A stretch of 64,000 nt of DNA, from the sequence record NC_010821.1; one strand, given 5' to 3'. Of the stretch, positions 13,767-20,007 are shown one piece after another. The translations under genes were made by a program, and so were the position numbers. The notes below the pieces were generated by a model. The model ran no database searches and was not told the DNA's origin. It saw only the letters and a program-made list of their open reading frames with translations. Every line of letters starts with the position of its first letter. The first letter of the stretch is position 1.

Positions 13767-13793
13767 ACATAAAGCCCCTCCTGAAGGAGGGGC
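13767..13793 (+). terminator. stem-loop GCCCCTCC/GGAGGGGC
   Basis: ACATAAA flank plus 8-bp stem right after the stop; no T tract. Confidence 0.7.
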
Positions 13794-14147: not shown

Positions 14148-14173
14148 TGCCCTCCTTCGGGAGGGCATTATGT
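14148..14173 (+). terminator. stem-loop TGCCCTCC-TTCG-GGAGGGCA
   Basis: 8-bp stem, cUUCGg loop, TTATGT flank. Confidence 0.8.
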
Positions 14174-14185
14174 CATTAAAAGCTT

Positions 14186-14202
14186 TTTAAAGAGTATATT
14201 AC
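14186..14202 (+). promoter_or_regulatory. early promoter (TATATTAC)
   Basis: Exact phiKZ early-promoter core TATATTAC with upstream TTTTTAA, just before an RBS (GAGGTG). Confidence 0.7.
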
Positions 14203-14212
14203 AGAGGTGTAT

Positions 14213-14650
14213 ATGGAAGCAACCTTGACGATCACACGTGAAGGATCGATGTATGCTGATTTTCTGATGGACTCAGCTCCAGTTGGATTTGAAGACTGTT
14301 TAGAAAAATCAGAACTACTGCGCCGACTCCATTGGGGTCAGGCTTTTGCTGAACTTGGTGAACCGATCACCGATAATCTAATTGGTGACCCAGTAGCTAC
14401 ACTTCGTAGAATACATTGTCTTGAAGAGCGAAATATATGCGCCCATGTTACAATGCGTGTCATGGATCTATCAGGCGATCACCTACGAGCGTTCTTTAAA
14501 CCATACGGTCCAATGGCTGATAAACTCCGTGGACTCTGGCTAACCAATCCAACTGGGTTGAAAGCTAAGTTCCGTTACATCCAAGCTAATAATGATGAAG
14601 GCGATTTAACCGTCACCAACATCTATGGCATCGACGTCATTCAAAATTAA
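14213..14650 (+). CDS. head-maturation-protease-fold paralogue, predicted inactive
   Basis: SELLRRL..AELGEP, RRI..LEERNICAHV, FKPYGP, AKFRY, NIYGIDV mirror the gp175-type motifs as I recall them, but His->Glu and Ser->Lys. Confidence 0.65.
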   Translation: MEATLTITREGSMYADFLMDSAPVGFEDCLEKSELLRRLHWGQAFAELGEPITDNLIGDPVATLRRIHCLEERNICAHVTMRVMDLSGDHLRAFFKPYGPMADKLRGLWLTNPTGLKAKFRYIQANNDEGDLTVTNIYGIDVIQN

Positions 14651-14669: not shown

Positions 14670-15344
14670 ATGCGTATTGACAATACTAAAGTAGAAAGCT
14701 TCAAAAACTGGTTCTTTGGTCGTCCGAATATTAATTTCGATGACCTTGATGATCAGGCATTCAACGAGTTGTCGATCCATGTTGCAGCTGAGAGCGATCT
14801 GCCGAAAGAAGCAGACCCCGAGGCTAAATACTACGTCGAGGCAACTGGTGATACCTATCGCTTCGTCGATGGGGCTTATCAAGTAATAGATGTTTACAGT
14901 TTCGGTGTAACCCAAGCTTACCGTGACGCACCACGTCGCGTGTACGCCCGTGAGACCATTGTGGACCATTCCCATGGCATTCCATCGATCACCGCTGAAC
15001 AGATCCGTAACGGCGCTCCAGCCGGTTTGGCGACACTCTACAACATCCAAGCGTTGTTGATGGATCTTGAACAGATCCGTCGTATTGATGTTTACGGGTA
15101 TAAAACGACCTTGATGGATGTTTTGAGTCAGGGGGCTTATTCCACCAAAGAACAAAACGTTACACACTGGTTCTCCACTCAACACACTCTGTTGTATCGC
15201 CTGCTGGCGTCCAGCATGCGTGCAAAAGACGCGTTCAACAAATCTGTAATCGATGCTCTGTTCAAACACAACTACGTACTGACTTGGGACGATGCTAAAA
15301 ATCGCCCAGTCTTTAAAGTGGATGACTTCATCGTTTATCTGTGA
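14670..15344 (+). CDS. hypothetical protein (224 aa)
   Basis: AGGA RBS, phage-typical codon usage; no recognisable motif. Confidence 0.8.
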   Translation: MRIDNTKVESFKNWFFGRPNINFDDLDDQAFNELSIHVAAESDLPKEADPEAKYYVEATGDTYRFVDGAYQVIDVYSFGVTQAYRDAPRRVYARETIVDHSHGIPSITAEQIRNGAPAGLATLYNIQALLMDLEQIRRIDVYGYKTTLMDVLSQGAYSTKEQNVTHWFSTQHTLLYRLLASSMRAKDAFNKSVIDALFKHNYVLTWDDAKNRPVFKVDDFIVYL

Positions 15345-15351
15345 GGTGGTT

Positions 15352-15630
15352 ATGCGACTTAAAATCTTGGCTGTGTTATCGGTTGTACTATTGGCTGGCT
15401 GCAATAAGGAACCGGATCAAGTCATTGGTACACTGATGGCATCACGTTGTGATGTAGAGTGTGGTGTCGTCATTAACTCGAAAGGCATTGCCAATGATGA
15501 TGTTCTACGTGAGTTCAAAACCTGCGGTGGGGACAATAAAGATCTGATAGGTCGTAAGGTGATTGCCTTCAAGCAGAATCTCGTTCACGGTGAAACCTGT
15601 ATGACAGTATACGAATACCTACAACGCTAA
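15352..15630 (+). CDS. predicted lipoprotein
   Basis: MRLKILAVLSVVLLAG-C lipobox; GAGGTGG RBS; four additional Cys. Confidence 0.8.
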   Translation: MRLKILAVLSVVLLAGCNKEPDQVIGTLMASRCDVECGVVINSKGIANDDVLREFKTCGGDNKDLIGRKVIAFKQNLVHGETCMTVYEYLQR

Positions 15631-15639
15631 AGGTGCGAG

Positions 15640-16089
15640 ATGATTACGCTTGAAACTACAACATCGTTCGTACCTGCCTTCTCTGCGTTACCATTCATCA
15701 AATCTTTAAATCAGTACTATCCCGATATTGAATACTGGTATGTGAATAAAGTCATACCAGGCCTCACGTTAGGTAATGATAAGCTCATTGTCGCACGTGA
15801 TGAACACTTCAATATTGCTGGTATTGCTTTGGGTAAGTTGAGTGACGCTGAAGCGAAGTTGCGTTGTGTTCGTGTACACCCGGATCATCAGAATAGTGGT
15901 CTGGGTATTCGCCTGATCGACAACATGCTTGAGTTGATCGGCGAACGTAAACCTGGGGTGACTGTATCGGAAGAGATGATCAACCTTTACAGTCGTGCCT
16001 TCGTTAAACGCTATGGCTTTGAATTGTCCGACGTAACCAAAGGACGTTATCGCCGTGGCAAACTTGAATATGGATTCAATGGAGCGTAA
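15640..16089 (+). CDS. GNAT-family N-acetyltransferase
   Basis: Acetyl-CoA motif A: VRVHPDHQNSGLG; C-terminal F..RYGF. Confidence 0.85.
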   Translation: MITLETTTSFVPAFSALPFIKSLNQYYPDIEYWYVNKVIPGLTLGNDKLIVARDEHFNIAGIALGKLSDAEAKLRCVRVHPDHQNSGLGIRLIDNMLELIGERKPGVTVSEEMINLYSRAFVKRYGFELSDVTKGRYRRGKLEYGFNGA

Positions 16090-16467
16090 ATGGAATACCT
16101 GATCGACCTCTCGAAGAAAACGTCAGCATATCGTGAAGCATTGCTACGTTATCTGACTGGTGGCAAATACCAGAAAATCGGTTGCTATATGGAGTACCGC
16201 CACCCAACCAAACTTCGCAGCGAATCCCTAGATGACTTCATCCAGCGATACCATCAAACCGATGATCGAAACTGGTGTGCACGTGCCACTGACATCACAG
16301 TGGTTGGTGATGAGCTGGTGATCACGGTCACTCCTTTTGGGGTATGGAAAGATAGCGTTGATTTTGATGAACGTTGGCCTTCTGCGCGCATCATCCAGTT
16401 CAATGGTGAGGTTAAGGAAATCGTTGGGTTTGACTTGATCCTAAAGGCGAACCATAACGATTTCTAA
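16090..16467 (+). CDS. miniature head-maturation-protease-fold protein, catalytic His/Ser retained
   Basis: MEYRHP, F..RY...DDRNWCAR, VTPFG, PSAR, IVGFDLI align with gp175-type GELGHP / FSIR / IVTFD motifs. Confidence 0.6.
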   Translation: MEYLIDLSKKTSAYREALLRYLTGGKYQKIGCYMEYRHPTKLRSESLDDFIQRYHQTDDRNWCARATDITVVGDELVITVTPFGVWKDSVDFDERWPSARIIQFNGEVKEIVGFDLILKANHNDF

Positions 16468-16470
16468 GTA

Positions 16471-16522
16471 GACGACATAAAGCCAGCTCCTTCGGGAGCT
16501 GGCATATGCTGTTATTTTTTTT
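16471..16522. terminator. bidirectional terminator
   Basis: GCCAGCTCC-TTCG-GGAGCTGGC plus T tract, between convergent genes. Confidence 0.85.
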
Positions 16523-16953
16523 CAGTTTTCAGTGTATTCTAACGTAATAGAATCTGAAGGGAGGTACGCTAAACAGGCAGGTGTAGTTGCAATAGTGACA
16601 GTAGGACCTGAGATATTACGATCCAAGAATTCATTATCACTTAAAGGTACACCCAACGTATCACGTAATACCTTTAGAACATCGTAGAATCTCTTGTACG
16701 AGCTAGACTTGCCTGGAACCTTAATACCCCTAAGGTCTTCACTCAATCGCCGCCTAACGTAGTACAGTGTTTGAACACCACCGAAGTTATTACTGTCGGC
16801 TCTAGCCACAATATTAATTCGGGAATTACATTGACCCTGTAACCAAATCTCAGGAACGCTAAAATTAACGTCAGCTGGTTGAATTGGAGGCTTAACCTTG
16901 TTAGCCGTATTAAAAGCGGTTAGTAAACTTTGTTTGATGTCAGTGCTTACCAT
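16522..16953 (-). CDS. virion structural protein (Y-x-R-x-x-L paralogue family)
   Basis: ORF track 16522..16989; ATG at 16953 with GAGG RBS; SLLTAFNTAN..YYVRRRL. Confidence 0.7.
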   Translation of the reverse strand: MVSTDIKQSLLTAFNTANKVKPPIQPADVNFSVPEIWLQGQCNSRINIVARADSNNFGGVQTLYYVRRRLSEDLRGIKVPGKSSSYKRFYDVLKVLRDTLGVPLSDNEFLDRNISGPTVTIATTPACLAYLPSDSITLEYTEN

Positions 16954-16960
16954 GTTGACC

Positions 16961-17833
16961 TCAGTTATAGTGGAGCAGTAAATAACCACTCATGTTGTTA
17001 GCTAACCCACTGACCCGTAATACACACACCTGTTGAATGTCTTTACGTGGAGAGTACCGTGGCAACACGATGCCATTGTAAAGTACACTCAATCTAGCCT
17101 CACCTGAAATAACCTCACCGGCTATGTTCCAGTCCACCACTTCGGTACTACACACGAATGGATAAGTGGTAACATCATTAAGGATTGCTGCCAGCTTACG
17201 ACCACTCGGCCATACGGAAGCACTGGACAAGTCTTTGATGAATTCACGTTCATGGGTGAAATCAAAACCGCTAGTCGTAAACTGACTAACGATTTTACCA
17301 TCTACACTACCTAGAGGTCTAGGGTTAGCGGTGATGAGTTCTAATTTATCACCTACGTTGGCCAATAGCTGCTTAGTGGTATTGACCAGCTCGAATTGAA
17401 CTGATCCTACAAACCGCAATGACTTAGGTGACGCTGTCAGTGTATAGACACGTTGATATTCATCGTACTGTACATGGACAAAATCGTTCAATGTAAATAC
17501 GATGTCATTTAGTTCGCCAATAGCAGCGAGCACTTTAAACGTATTGGTAGGTAAAGCGAAGTCACTGAGTTGTTTGATAGCTGGACCCACAAAGAAACTC
17601 GCTAGGTCTAAACGATCGTAAACATAGTTCTCACGGGTAACCTCAGGTTGAGTGTTGTTTGGGTCGATGCTACGACGAGCATCAACCTCAATCTGTGTCC
17701 GTGTTCCACCCAAAGAAACCATCGATTTAAGTGTTGCGGTGTAAGGAGTCAAATCGGTGAGATACACTTCATTGATCCGATTGATCACAGCAACCCATGG
17801 GTCAGCTGCTAAATAGTCTTTTGTGCTATACAT
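16961..17833 (-). CDS. virion structural protein (phiKZ gp127-like)
   Basis: DPWVAVINRINE..YVYDRLDL motif; synteny before gp128/portal. Confidence 0.7.
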   Translation of the reverse strand: MYSTKDYLAADPWVAVINRINEVYLTDLTPYTATLKSMVSLGGTRTQIEVDARRSIDPNNTQPEVTRENYVYDRLDLASFFVGPAIKQLSDFALPTNTFKVLAAIGELNDIVFTLNDFVHVQYDEYQRVYTLTASPKSLRFVGSVQFELVNTTKQLLANVGDKLELITANPRPLGSVDGKIVSQFTTSGFDFTHEREFIKDLSSASVWPSGRKLAAILNDVTTYPFVCSTEVVDWNIAGEVISGEARLSVLYNGIVLPRYSPRKDIQQVCVLRVSGLANNMSGYLLLHYN

Positions 17834-17835
17834 AC

Positions 17836-20007
17836 TCAACTCTCAAATTTGGGCCAGTCTGTTTCAGTTGGAGGTTCATAGATACCCAGTTCGCCATTCG
17901 GGTCAGGATCGTTGTAAACGGTAATGTTGACATTACTAATACCCAAGCCAATTACAGGCATTGGATAATTACCTTCTTTAAAGGACGTCTCAACAATATC
18001 TACCATTGGATCGATACACCATTTACCTTGTTGACGATAATGCCATGAGATCTCTGGACCCACTACAGCATCGCTGATCAGATAGCGTGCTTTCTCAAGG
18101 GCAGCGTACTGCCTTAGAGCGATGTTAACAATAGGTACAATAAGCGTATCACCGGACGAAGCAGAGATATCACCAATACGGGGCATTACCATACCCAGCA
18201 CATGGAACTTGGTGTATTCCACATTGCGTAGGAATTGTGCAATGTAACTAGACATCTTTGACATCAGTCTAAGGAGTTCACGTTGTACTTCCCCAAGAGT
18301 AATGATCTTAACCAAGTTTGCACCGGTAGCGATGTTAATGGTATCTAACATCAACTGTTCCATGTCTGGATTGGACAAATCGGTAATGTCGAAGCCTTGA
18401 GCCTTAAAGTAATCATCCCATGCAATATCGCCGTCTACCAAGGTACACATGCGGTTCATGTAGTGCATGCGAACAATTTGTTCACAATACCCACGACCAA
18501 CCATGTGTTCTTGGAAACTATATAGTTCCCACTGTTTGATATATCGTTGATGTGCACCAACGCAGTCAAGATAGAACTGCTCTGTGGAGATATAGTCACT
18601 CATTGGAGGTGTCAGGTCTTGGATAGCCGTAATGATCCGATCAGGAATAATACGGATAGGTGACATCTCCCGCAGTTCAGCAAACGTAGGAGACCTTGGT
18701 CGCAATACATCGTAGGCTACGAACTTTGGAATAGTCGGACTTAGCCAACCGCGAGTTTTCATCCAGCAATACATCGTGATGATCCAAGCATCCTTAACCG
18801 ACATGGTCATGTTAACACCATTCTTAGGATTAGGTACTTGAATGAAAGCTCTATAGCGCTGACTTGATGCTAGGTCCAGCCACTCGTTCAATAGAACGTC
18901 CTGTAGACTGCGTACGTTAGACACAGAGCGGTCGATAACCTCAGAGTCATACACACGGGTAGGTAACGTGCTATAAGCTCCGTAACCCATGTCACGTTGG
19001 ATGTCACGCTCGGTATCGAATTGGACCAGAGCGTTGTCACGTGCCAATGGTTCTTCCCGTACTAAAATATTCATCGTAGGTACAGCGGCATTATCTTCAT
19101 CAACCACTTTGAAGTTAATGTCATGCTTAACCATTTCAGCAGAAGCTTTGAAGTCACGTAACAGGTTCTTAGAGTTCTGTTCCAGAGTGTATTCGAGAAT
19201 AGGAATACCGCGATGAGTTAGAATGTTTTGAACCAACCGCTTGAAGTTATCCTTACTACCGGCATGTCGCTGCAAGTAATTAATGTTACGGTATAACCAA
19301 AGCATCTGGTAAGTGTCAAGATAGGGGATGAAGTCATCTAGATGTTGATGCGATGCAAGGTATTCACGAATATGGTAACTATGGGCTTGGTTAGTCTTAG
19401 CTTTGTCTAAGCGCATTGCCATGATAGCAGGTACCATTCGCATATAGAGATTACCTAAGAAACCAGCATGGAACAGTGCATCGACTAAGTTGAACTGATC
19501 GTTGTACCAATGCAAATAGAATGCATCTACCCAATCTTGTAGTTCATAAATCAATATACCCTCTTGTTCCTCGATGTACTGTGCGTCGTAATAGAGGATT
19601 TTCCCATTGGGTGCGTCGATAGCCGTTTGGATGTCAACTGGGAAAAGGATACCTGTAATCAAGTCAACTTGTTTAGGGTATTGACGAGATAAACTTTTAT
19701 ATAGCGTACTACCCGGTACATAAGCCCGTGCAGTAGCTCGGTGGATAAGTAGATTGGCCTTAGTAAATTCAATCATTTCCAGCGTGTCAGCTGAACGAAC
19801 GTACATCATCTCATCGGTTGAATGATATTCCCCGGCTAAGTGCATGTAATATTTCCACGTAGTTGGTTCGTCTTGGTCTACAGTAATTGGATAGTTGCGC
19901 TCTAATTGATAGTTGATTTGTTCAGCAGTTTCACTAAACTTAATAATAACTGACCTTACCAATTTGATAGTGTCAGAACGATAAACATCAAAGTATACGT
20001 TACTCAT
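17836..20007 (-). CDS. virion structural/baseplate protein (phiKZ gp128-like)
   Basis: 723 aa divergent from the portal; TWKYYMHLAGEYH and YLWLYRNI-type motifs. Confidence 0.75.
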   Translation of the reverse strand: MSNVYFDVYRSDTIKLVRSVIIKFSETAEQINYQLERNYPITVDQDEPTTWKYYMHLAGEYHSTDEMMYVRSADTLEMIEFTKANLLIHRATARAYVPGSTLYKSLSRQYPKQVDLITGILFPVDIQTAIDAPNGKILYYDAQYIEEQEGILIYELQDWVDAFYLHWYNDQFNLVDALFHAGFLGNLYMRMVPAIMAMRLDKAKTNQAHSYHIREYLASHQHLDDFIPYLDTYQMLWLYRNINYLQRHAGSKDNFKRLVQNILTHRGIPILEYTLEQNSKNLLRDFKASAEMVKHDINFKVVDEDNAAVPTMNILVREEPLARDNALVQFDTERDIQRDMGYGAYSTLPTRVYDSEVIDRSVSNVRSLQDVLLNEWLDLASSQRYRAFIQVPNPKNGVNMTMSVKDAWIITMYCWMKTRGWLSPTIPKFVAYDVLRPRSPTFAELREMSPIRIIPDRIITAIQDLTPPMSDYISTEQFYLDCVGAHQRYIKQWELYSFQEHMVGRGYCEQIVRMHYMNRMCTLVDGDIAWDDYFKAQGFDITDLSNPDMEQLMLDTINIATGANLVKIITLGEVQRELLRLMSKMSSYIAQFLRNVEYTKFHVLGMVMPRIGDISASSGDTLIVPIVNIALRQYAALEKARYLISDAVVGPEISWHYRQQGKWCIDPMVDIVETSFKEGNYPMPVIGLGISNVNITVYNDPDPNGELGIYEPPTETDWPKFES

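Follow-up and report, generated by a model that had tools for sequence, protein, structure and literature searches.

The analysed stretch of DNA (64,000 nucleotides, hereafter the window) corresponds, at 100% identity, to bases 124001–188000 of the genome of Pseudomonas phage 201phi2-1 (NC_010821 / EU197055). The open reading frame at 14213–14650 on the forward strand is gp206, whose stop-free translation of 145 aa is 100% identical to the record, and a second frame relevant here, at 16090–16467 on the same strand, is gp210. Both products are named "hypothetical protein" in GenBank and "head maturation protease" in RefSeq, the latter name having probably been transferred from PHROG-type annotation. 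The genuine prohead protease of this phage is gp268, encoded outside the window (genome positions 192375–193217), and its record mentions both mass-spectrometric detection in the virion and a resemblance to phiKZ gp175. A scan of the whole 201phi2-1 record with PF20034 yielded matches at exactly three places, and the giant phage carries three S80-like genes, namely, gp206, gp210, and gp268.

Organization of the gp206–gp210 unit

gp206 heads a five-gene unit (gp206–gp210) that is bracketed by hairpins. The features of this unit and its flanks are listed below in window coordinates.

14149..14166 (+), perfect 7-bp, GC-rich hairpin with a TTCG loop, located after the stop codon of gp205
14174..14209 (+), predicted early promoter of the virion-RNA-polymerase type, comprising an AT-rich element, a TATATTAC core, and GTG
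14213..14650 (+), gp206, S80-like protein
14670..15344 (+), gp207, homologue of phiKZ gp125, phrog_14839
15352..15630 (+), gp208, small protein with a lipoprotein-type signal MRLKILAVLSVVLLAGC ending in LLAGC
15640..16089 (+), gp209, GNAT acetyltransferase
16090..16467 (+), gp210, second short (mini) S80-like paralogue, 125 aa, from another subclade
16482..16503 (no strand assigned), 9-bp GC-rich hairpin between the convergent genes gp210 (+) and gp211 (−), at which the unit ends

No family match was found for gp208. Viktualia and two metagenomic contigs share with 201phi2-1 the arrangement gp204 – small ORFs – gp206 – gp207 – (gp208) – GNAT – convergent virion genes, and a mini-protease gene is situated upstream of a gp207 homologue in Phabio (gp193), PhiPA3 (gp143), and PS119XW (gp147) as well. 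The gp207 homologue follows the mini-protease gene directly in 201phi2-1, Viktualia, the two metagenomic contigs, and PS119XW, and a gap of ~55–70 nt separates the two genes in PhiPA3 and Phabio. The genome of Phabio contains three mini S80-like genes, gp193 plus the tandem pair gp341–gp342, the latter adjoining the genes for ribose-phosphate pyrophosphokinase and NAMPT; Viktualia has one mini S80-like gene at the equivalent metabolic locus. On the other side of the downstream hairpin, gp211 and gp212 (16522–17839, −) carry DUF7941, a domain of two very abundant virion proteins of phage Goslar, gp22 and gp23 (2026 preprint).

The last gene of the unit, gp210, matches phrog_7478 over its full length (E 5.3e-32) and Pfam Peptidase_S80 above the cut-off (E 3.4e-6). 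A preliminary description of this DNA had taken gp210 for an active mini-protease. This holds for two of the triad residues, His38 and Asp115, which are retained, but the assignment of the Ser depends on the alignment: comparison with the nearest relatives points to S98 (PSARII in gp210 vs. PAARII in cluster P0054), whereas both hhalign and a large MAFFT alignment place D93 in this column. For this reason, the status of gp210 as an active enzyme is not established.

A word-index search with gp210 retrieved only gp210 itself, and the gene is absent from the equivalent site in Viktualia and in the two metagenomic contigs. In a 99%-identical relative from a rhizosphere metagenome (195-kb contig), gp206–gp209 are kept, and 648 other letters take the place of gp210 (joint 16121 to 16495). 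The end of the cassette (gp210, window 16090–16495) is a swappable, variable slot.

Homology, fold, and catalytic residues of gp206

The preliminary description had presented gp206 as a catalytically dead paralogue with a protease fold, based on a series of motifs shared with gp210 and with the canonical head protease. The translation contains every motif quoted there, and the relationship is borne out by profile alignment, by a family match, and by the predicted fold. The match of gp206 to phrog_7478 ("head maturation protease") has E 4.4e-40 and covers the full length of the protein (residues 2–145); the match to Pfam Peptidase_S80 (E 0.011, 15.3 bits) is below the 23.4-bit cut-off. Alignment of the canonical S80 profile with the profile of the mini proteins by hhalign gave a probability of 99.4% and E 1.9e-21 over 109 columns. 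In this alignment, residues H90, S176, and D199 of gp268 are paired with E50, K119, and D141 of gp206, and these columns coincide with the published triad H77/S153/D178 of SPN3US gp245. When 1.84 billion representatives were searched exhaustively with the HMM of the mini proteins, 47 proteins were returned at E ≤ 1e-3, a mixture of short (125–173 aa) and full-length S80 proteins, with E-values for full-length proteases down to ~1e-8. Direct comparison of gp206 with gp210 gave a BLASTP E-value of 1e-4, and phrog_7478 is matched by both. These sequence comparisons establish that gp206 is genuinely homologous to the S80 prohead protease, represented by 201phi2-1 gp268 and phiKZ gp175.

The AF2 model of gp206, built from eight sequences, has pLDDT 81.7 and pTM 0.74, one of the five models being confident. 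The sole significant match of this model in a Foldseek search of the PDB is the T4 protease gp21 (5JBL; E 1.2e-4, probability 1.0). The VIA-align superposition with 5JBL has Z 10.7 and rmsd 3.3 Å for 127 of the 145 residues, spanning model residues 1–145, and the next-best VIA match after T4 gp21 has Z 4.9. No match was obtained when PDB sequences were searched with the S80 profile (HMM), so that the link to T4 gp21, a member of S77, is made via fold comparison only. An independent ESM Atlas model of gp206 (pTM 0.80) has Peptidase S80 (TM 0.73) and S77 (TM 0.68) as the nearest structural clusters. The extent of the superposition, together with the Atlas neighbours, indicates that gp206 is the complete protease core rather than a fragment. 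A weak match to the model was also observed for a herpesvirus assemblin, the KSHV protease (Z 3.2). In contrast to T4 gp21 and assemblin, with which its sequence identity is ~10–14%, gp206 has no catalytic dyad.

The codons at the triad positions of gp206 are the following.

14360–14362 (+), E50, replacing the catalytic His
14567–14569 (+), K119, replacing the catalytic Ser
14633–14635 (+), D141, the third residue of the triad, kept

The substitutions of His by Glu and of Ser by Lys, noticed already from the translation, coincide with the hhalign columns. The motif at the His column is ELGEP in gp206 vs. ExGHP in active enzymes, and the motif at the Ser column is AKFR vs. FSIR (FSxR). Given the replacement of both residues, gp206 very probably does not function as a serine protease, and hence the RefSeq label "head maturation protease" is functionally misleading for this protein, the real protease being gp268. 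All framework positions that do not vary among active enzymes are preserved in gp206 (E47-x-G-x-P51, R66, C76, P97-x-G99, R121, and D141). Glu50 and Lys119, which occupy the places of the former His–Ser dyad, are probably joined by a salt bridge.

The enzymes of MEROPS family S80 (phiKZ gp175, 201phi2-1 gp268, SPN3US gp245; PF20034) have in common with gp206 the homologous core, the predicted fold, and an identical order of motifs, i.e., ExGxP, R, CAH, PxG, xxR, D. One structural difference is in length, gp268 having 280 aa and gp206 145 aa: relative to gp268, gp206 is devoid of the ~40-aa N-terminal extension (the leader) and of the ~80-aa C-terminal one. It ends four residues past D141, right after the last core strand, and therefore has no counterpart of the C-terminal prohead-targeting, self-cleaved segment of the real protease. 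Unlike gp268, gp206 has no virion mass-spectrometry flag in the genome record, and its early-type promoter, predicted from sequence, differs from the late morphogenesis context of the S80 enzymes.

The core of this finding is already published: Ali et al. 2017 (PMC5694885) described a diverged prohead-protease paralogue in SPN3US (gp117) and named 201phi2-1 gp206 as a paralogue of this kind, diverged, truncated, and presumed to be inactive. What is added here is the residue-level picture, the putative early promoter, the selection analysis, a census of 36 members, and the third paralogue, gp210. The "cryptic protease" family of short, diverged, non-virion proteins (SPN3US gp117, homologues from Erwinia phages, PhiPA3 gp143; phrog_7478) includes gp206, which also fits the size typical of the group, about 125–165 aa with no protease extensions. 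Its members differ in the residues retained: SPN3US gp117 is reported with both Ser and Asp kept, whereas gp206 has neither Ser nor His; PhiPA3 gp143 has kept His and has Gly at the Ser column, whereas gp206 has lost both catalytic residues.

The census was based on an alignment of 48 sequences, 36 mini proteins and 12 full-length proteases, with the following results (numbering of gp206).

His column (50): H in 12/12 full-length and 7/36 mini proteins, the latter having 12 different residues in total
Ser column (119): S in 12/12 full-length and 2/36 mini proteins, the latter also having Gly (14), Lys (9), and Ala (4); 9 different residues
Asp column (141): D in 12/12 full-length and 36/36 mini proteins, i.e., invariant in 48/48 aligned sequences
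E47, P51, G99, and R121: each in 12/12 full-length and 36/36 mini proteins
R66: 12/12 full-length and 35/36 mini proteins

Judging by this alignment, His and/or Ser are gone in nearly all of the 36 mini homologues. A quick maximum-likelihood tree separates the full-length enzymes from the mini proteins by a branch with SH-aLRT 86, a moderate value obtained from a short alignment, and places gp206 and gp210 in different mini subclades. In the nearest non-orthologous cluster to gp206, P0010, His is present and the Ser column is occupied by Glu; the loss of Ser therefore predates the change of His to Glu. The Glu/Lys pair is seen again in cluster P0011. A check of the fusion proteins P0018 and P0028 for extra informative Pfam domains found none.

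These data bear on the possibility that gp206 is still an enzyme, with a non-canonical catalytic set formed, e.g., by Lys119, Glu50, Asp141, or Cys76. Residues C76, D141, and R121 are indeed conserved across the mini family, and the orthologous group of gp206 is invariant for E50 and K119. Against this, the family as a whole accommodates 12 and 9 residue types at the two catalytic positions, with Gly the commonest at the Ser column, and hence no alternative catalytic set is conserved through them. No protease class is known to use an arrangement of this type, and residual catalysis of this kind seems highly improbable.

Promoter region and flanking hairpins

The hairpin at 14149..14166 is a probable terminator closing the upstream unit, as suggested by its sequence and position; it is not listed by a consensus terminator scan because the stem is not followed by a T-run. 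Directly 3′ of the hairpin is TTATG (14168–14172), and both elements are also conserved in Viktualia and two metagenomic relatives. The TATATTAC core of the predicted promoter occupies 14195–14202 (+), 10 nt before the ATG of gp206, and a conserved GTG (14207–14209) is located 4 nt past this core.

Within the window alone, TATATTAC shows no enrichment, with one copy found vs. 2.2 expected. Genome-wide, there are 26 forward vs. three reverse copies, with ~8 expected per strand, and 21–24 of the 26 forward copies lie upstream of ORFs within an extended consensus of ~45 nt, ttAtTAgAA..taTTT.Aa...TATATTACta..GTGaAttaa, which the gp206 site fits. It is only this genome-wide extended consensus, and not the count in the window, that makes TATATTAC at gp206 credible as a promoter. 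The block comprising the hairpin, TTATG, the AT-rich element, TATATTAC, aRaGGTG, and ATG is kept in three relatives despite the saturation of synonymous sites. The original proposal that gp206 is the first gene behind an early-type promoter thus agrees with the genome-wide class of TATATTAC sites and with their conservation, the putative designation "early" being derived from the promoter motif alone. Searches for RNA runs of this phage retrieved only metagenomic DNA-type contigs, and read placement revealed relatives but no expression. No TATATTAC was found near the syntenic mini-protease genes of Phabio, PhiPA3, and PS119XW.

Early promoters of jumbo phages are conserved AT-rich motifs centred near position −10 and read by the virion RNA polymerase, and the core of phiKZ late promoters is TATG (PMC7598289). 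Application of the −10 rule from that work places the predicted transcription start near the GTG at 14207–14209. With a start ~6–7 nt after the motif, the leader of gp206 would be only ~4–6 nt, and the early mRNA would be nearly leaderless. The distance between the motif and the ATG is 26–49 nt at most sites of this class vs. 10 nt at gp206, and the latter arrangement is kept in the three relatives. An apparent Shine-Dalgarno sequence, AGAGG, would fall upstream of the predicted start.

As TTATG contains the late-promoter core TATG, dual transcription of gp206, both early and late, is possible. The GC-rich hairpins of this region (13774–13793, 14149–14172, and 16482–16503) are regularly followed directly by (T)TTATG(T), containing the phiKZ TATG core; judging from this arrangement, hairpin–TTATG junctions may combine a terminator with a late promoter.

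Selection and possible functions of gp206

Orthologues of gp206 form seven or eight clusters with 61–75% identity, and E50 and K119 are present in all of them. Their length is 145 aa throughout, with the exception of cluster P0007 (167 aa), for which a longer N-terminus was called, and no relative has a disrupted 145-aa frame. Pairwise dN/dS values for 201phi2-1, Viktualia, and the two metagenomic contigs are 0.09–0.14, with dS largely saturated; these values indicate that gp206 is under purifying selection.

The loss of the catalytic residues and of the C-terminal region, as well as the published description of gp206 as truncated and presumably inactive (PMC5694885), could also be accommodated by a decaying, functionless relic of a protease duplication, which is close to the 2017 "cryptic protease" reading. 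It is contradicted, however, by the low dN/dS, the intact frame, the conserved promoter, the synteny across several genera, and the size of the family, which comprises at least 36 clusters, all sharing five invariant positions, with R66 retained in 35/36. This explanation was rejected on account of dN/dS and conservation, and we regard it as barely credible.

In phiKZ, gp175 was the sole S80-type protein found, and no mini paralogue was detected; therefore, the function of the mini-protease is not universal in the phage family. Data on the essentiality of mini homologues were sought in transposon-sequencing papers on phiKZ and PCH45, phiKZ being devoid of such a gene.

The reading of gp206 as a pseudo-protease is well supported. 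In its complete form, it describes gp206 as a catalytically inert, stand-alone copy of the S80 prohead-protease core that is early, acts outside the capsid, and binds rather than cuts, and we consider this form probable. According to this scheme, gp206 would be made early, from a promoter of the class that the injected virion RNA polymerase is expected to read, would stay outside the capsid, and would bind its target through the former active-site cleft with no cutting. As for the nature of the target, a host-directed role in takeover or counter-defence is ranked first because of the early promoter, the patchy multi-copy distribution, and the high variability of the two cleft positions across the family, and its chances may be put at slightly below even. 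Regulation or shielding directed at the phage's own protease or at S/A/G-X-E substrates is favoured by paralogy, and is a possible but more doubtful role.

Pseudo-enzymes often regulate their active paralogues. Among proteases, cFLIP and iRhoms are regulatory pseudo-proteases, i.e., inactive paralogues of active proteases that are retained under selection. Their fold and biology are unrelated to those of gp206, and the likeness is an analogy confined to the retention of an inactive paralogue. By comparison with cFLIP and caspase-8, gp206 might be a regulator of morphogenesis that pairs with gp268 (or gp210) or with propeptides of head proteins and delays processing until the prohead is complete. 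This would be in line with its being a protease paralogue with a preserved framework, in which two Arg residues do not vary among the active enzymes, and with its conserved position among head and virion genes. On the other hand, an early promoter accords poorly with a function late in assembly, head maturation in phiKZ proceeds with no mini paralogue at all, and gp206 is not recorded in the virion. Prediction of a complex between gp206 and gp268 was not supportive, with a score of 0.00, which, per the tool, is evidence neither way and hence not evidence against pairing. On balance, a role in morphogenesis seems unlikely.

As stated in the preliminary description, prohead proteases trigger CBASS, and the literature confirms this background. 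According to a preprint (10.1101/2023.05.21.541620), prohead proteases activate CBASS and escape mutations map to these proteases; further, the CD-NTases of CBASS are activated by prohead-protease cleavage of a surface loop (PMC12991175). Since it is the protease activity that is sensed, an inactive copy would not set off the defence on its own, leaving only shielding of the loop or binding of the protease. Accordingly formulated, gp206 as a counter-defence shield or decoy would bind, uncut, the protease-sensitive activation loop of a host sensor, e.g., a CBASS CD-NTase, or of a different protease-sensing defence, or would bind the virion-borne protease, so that abortive infection would be averted. 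Besides the published loop cleavage and escape mutations, such a role would be consistent with the early-type promoter preceding gp206, with the patchy, multi-copy, fast-evolving mini family, and with the presence of gp268 in the virion. However, purifying selection and lineage-fixed E50 and K119 leave no arms-race signature within the orthologous group of gp206, and the published work on CBASS and proteases covers T4-like and T5-like phages rather than nucleus-forming ones. We hold the shield or decoy role to be rather improbable. A low probability is likewise assigned to gp206 being an early substrate trap or inhibitor of extra-capsid prohead-protease activity, either virion-borne or exerted on host loops such as that of the CBASS CD-NTase.

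The observation on gp206 is real and already known in kind. Returning to the pseudo-protease reading, the nucleophile is lost, yet the gene is under purifying selection, and such genes are found in multiple copies within a genome and across several genera of nucleus-forming jumbo phages, which argues for a function other than cutting. Because CBASS senses prohead-protease activity, whether dead copies manage this signal or restrain the phage's own protease is a directly testable question. If gp206 were indeed a substrate trap, the mini-S80 family of jumbo phages would represent diversifying protease-fold binders for host takeover or counter-defence.
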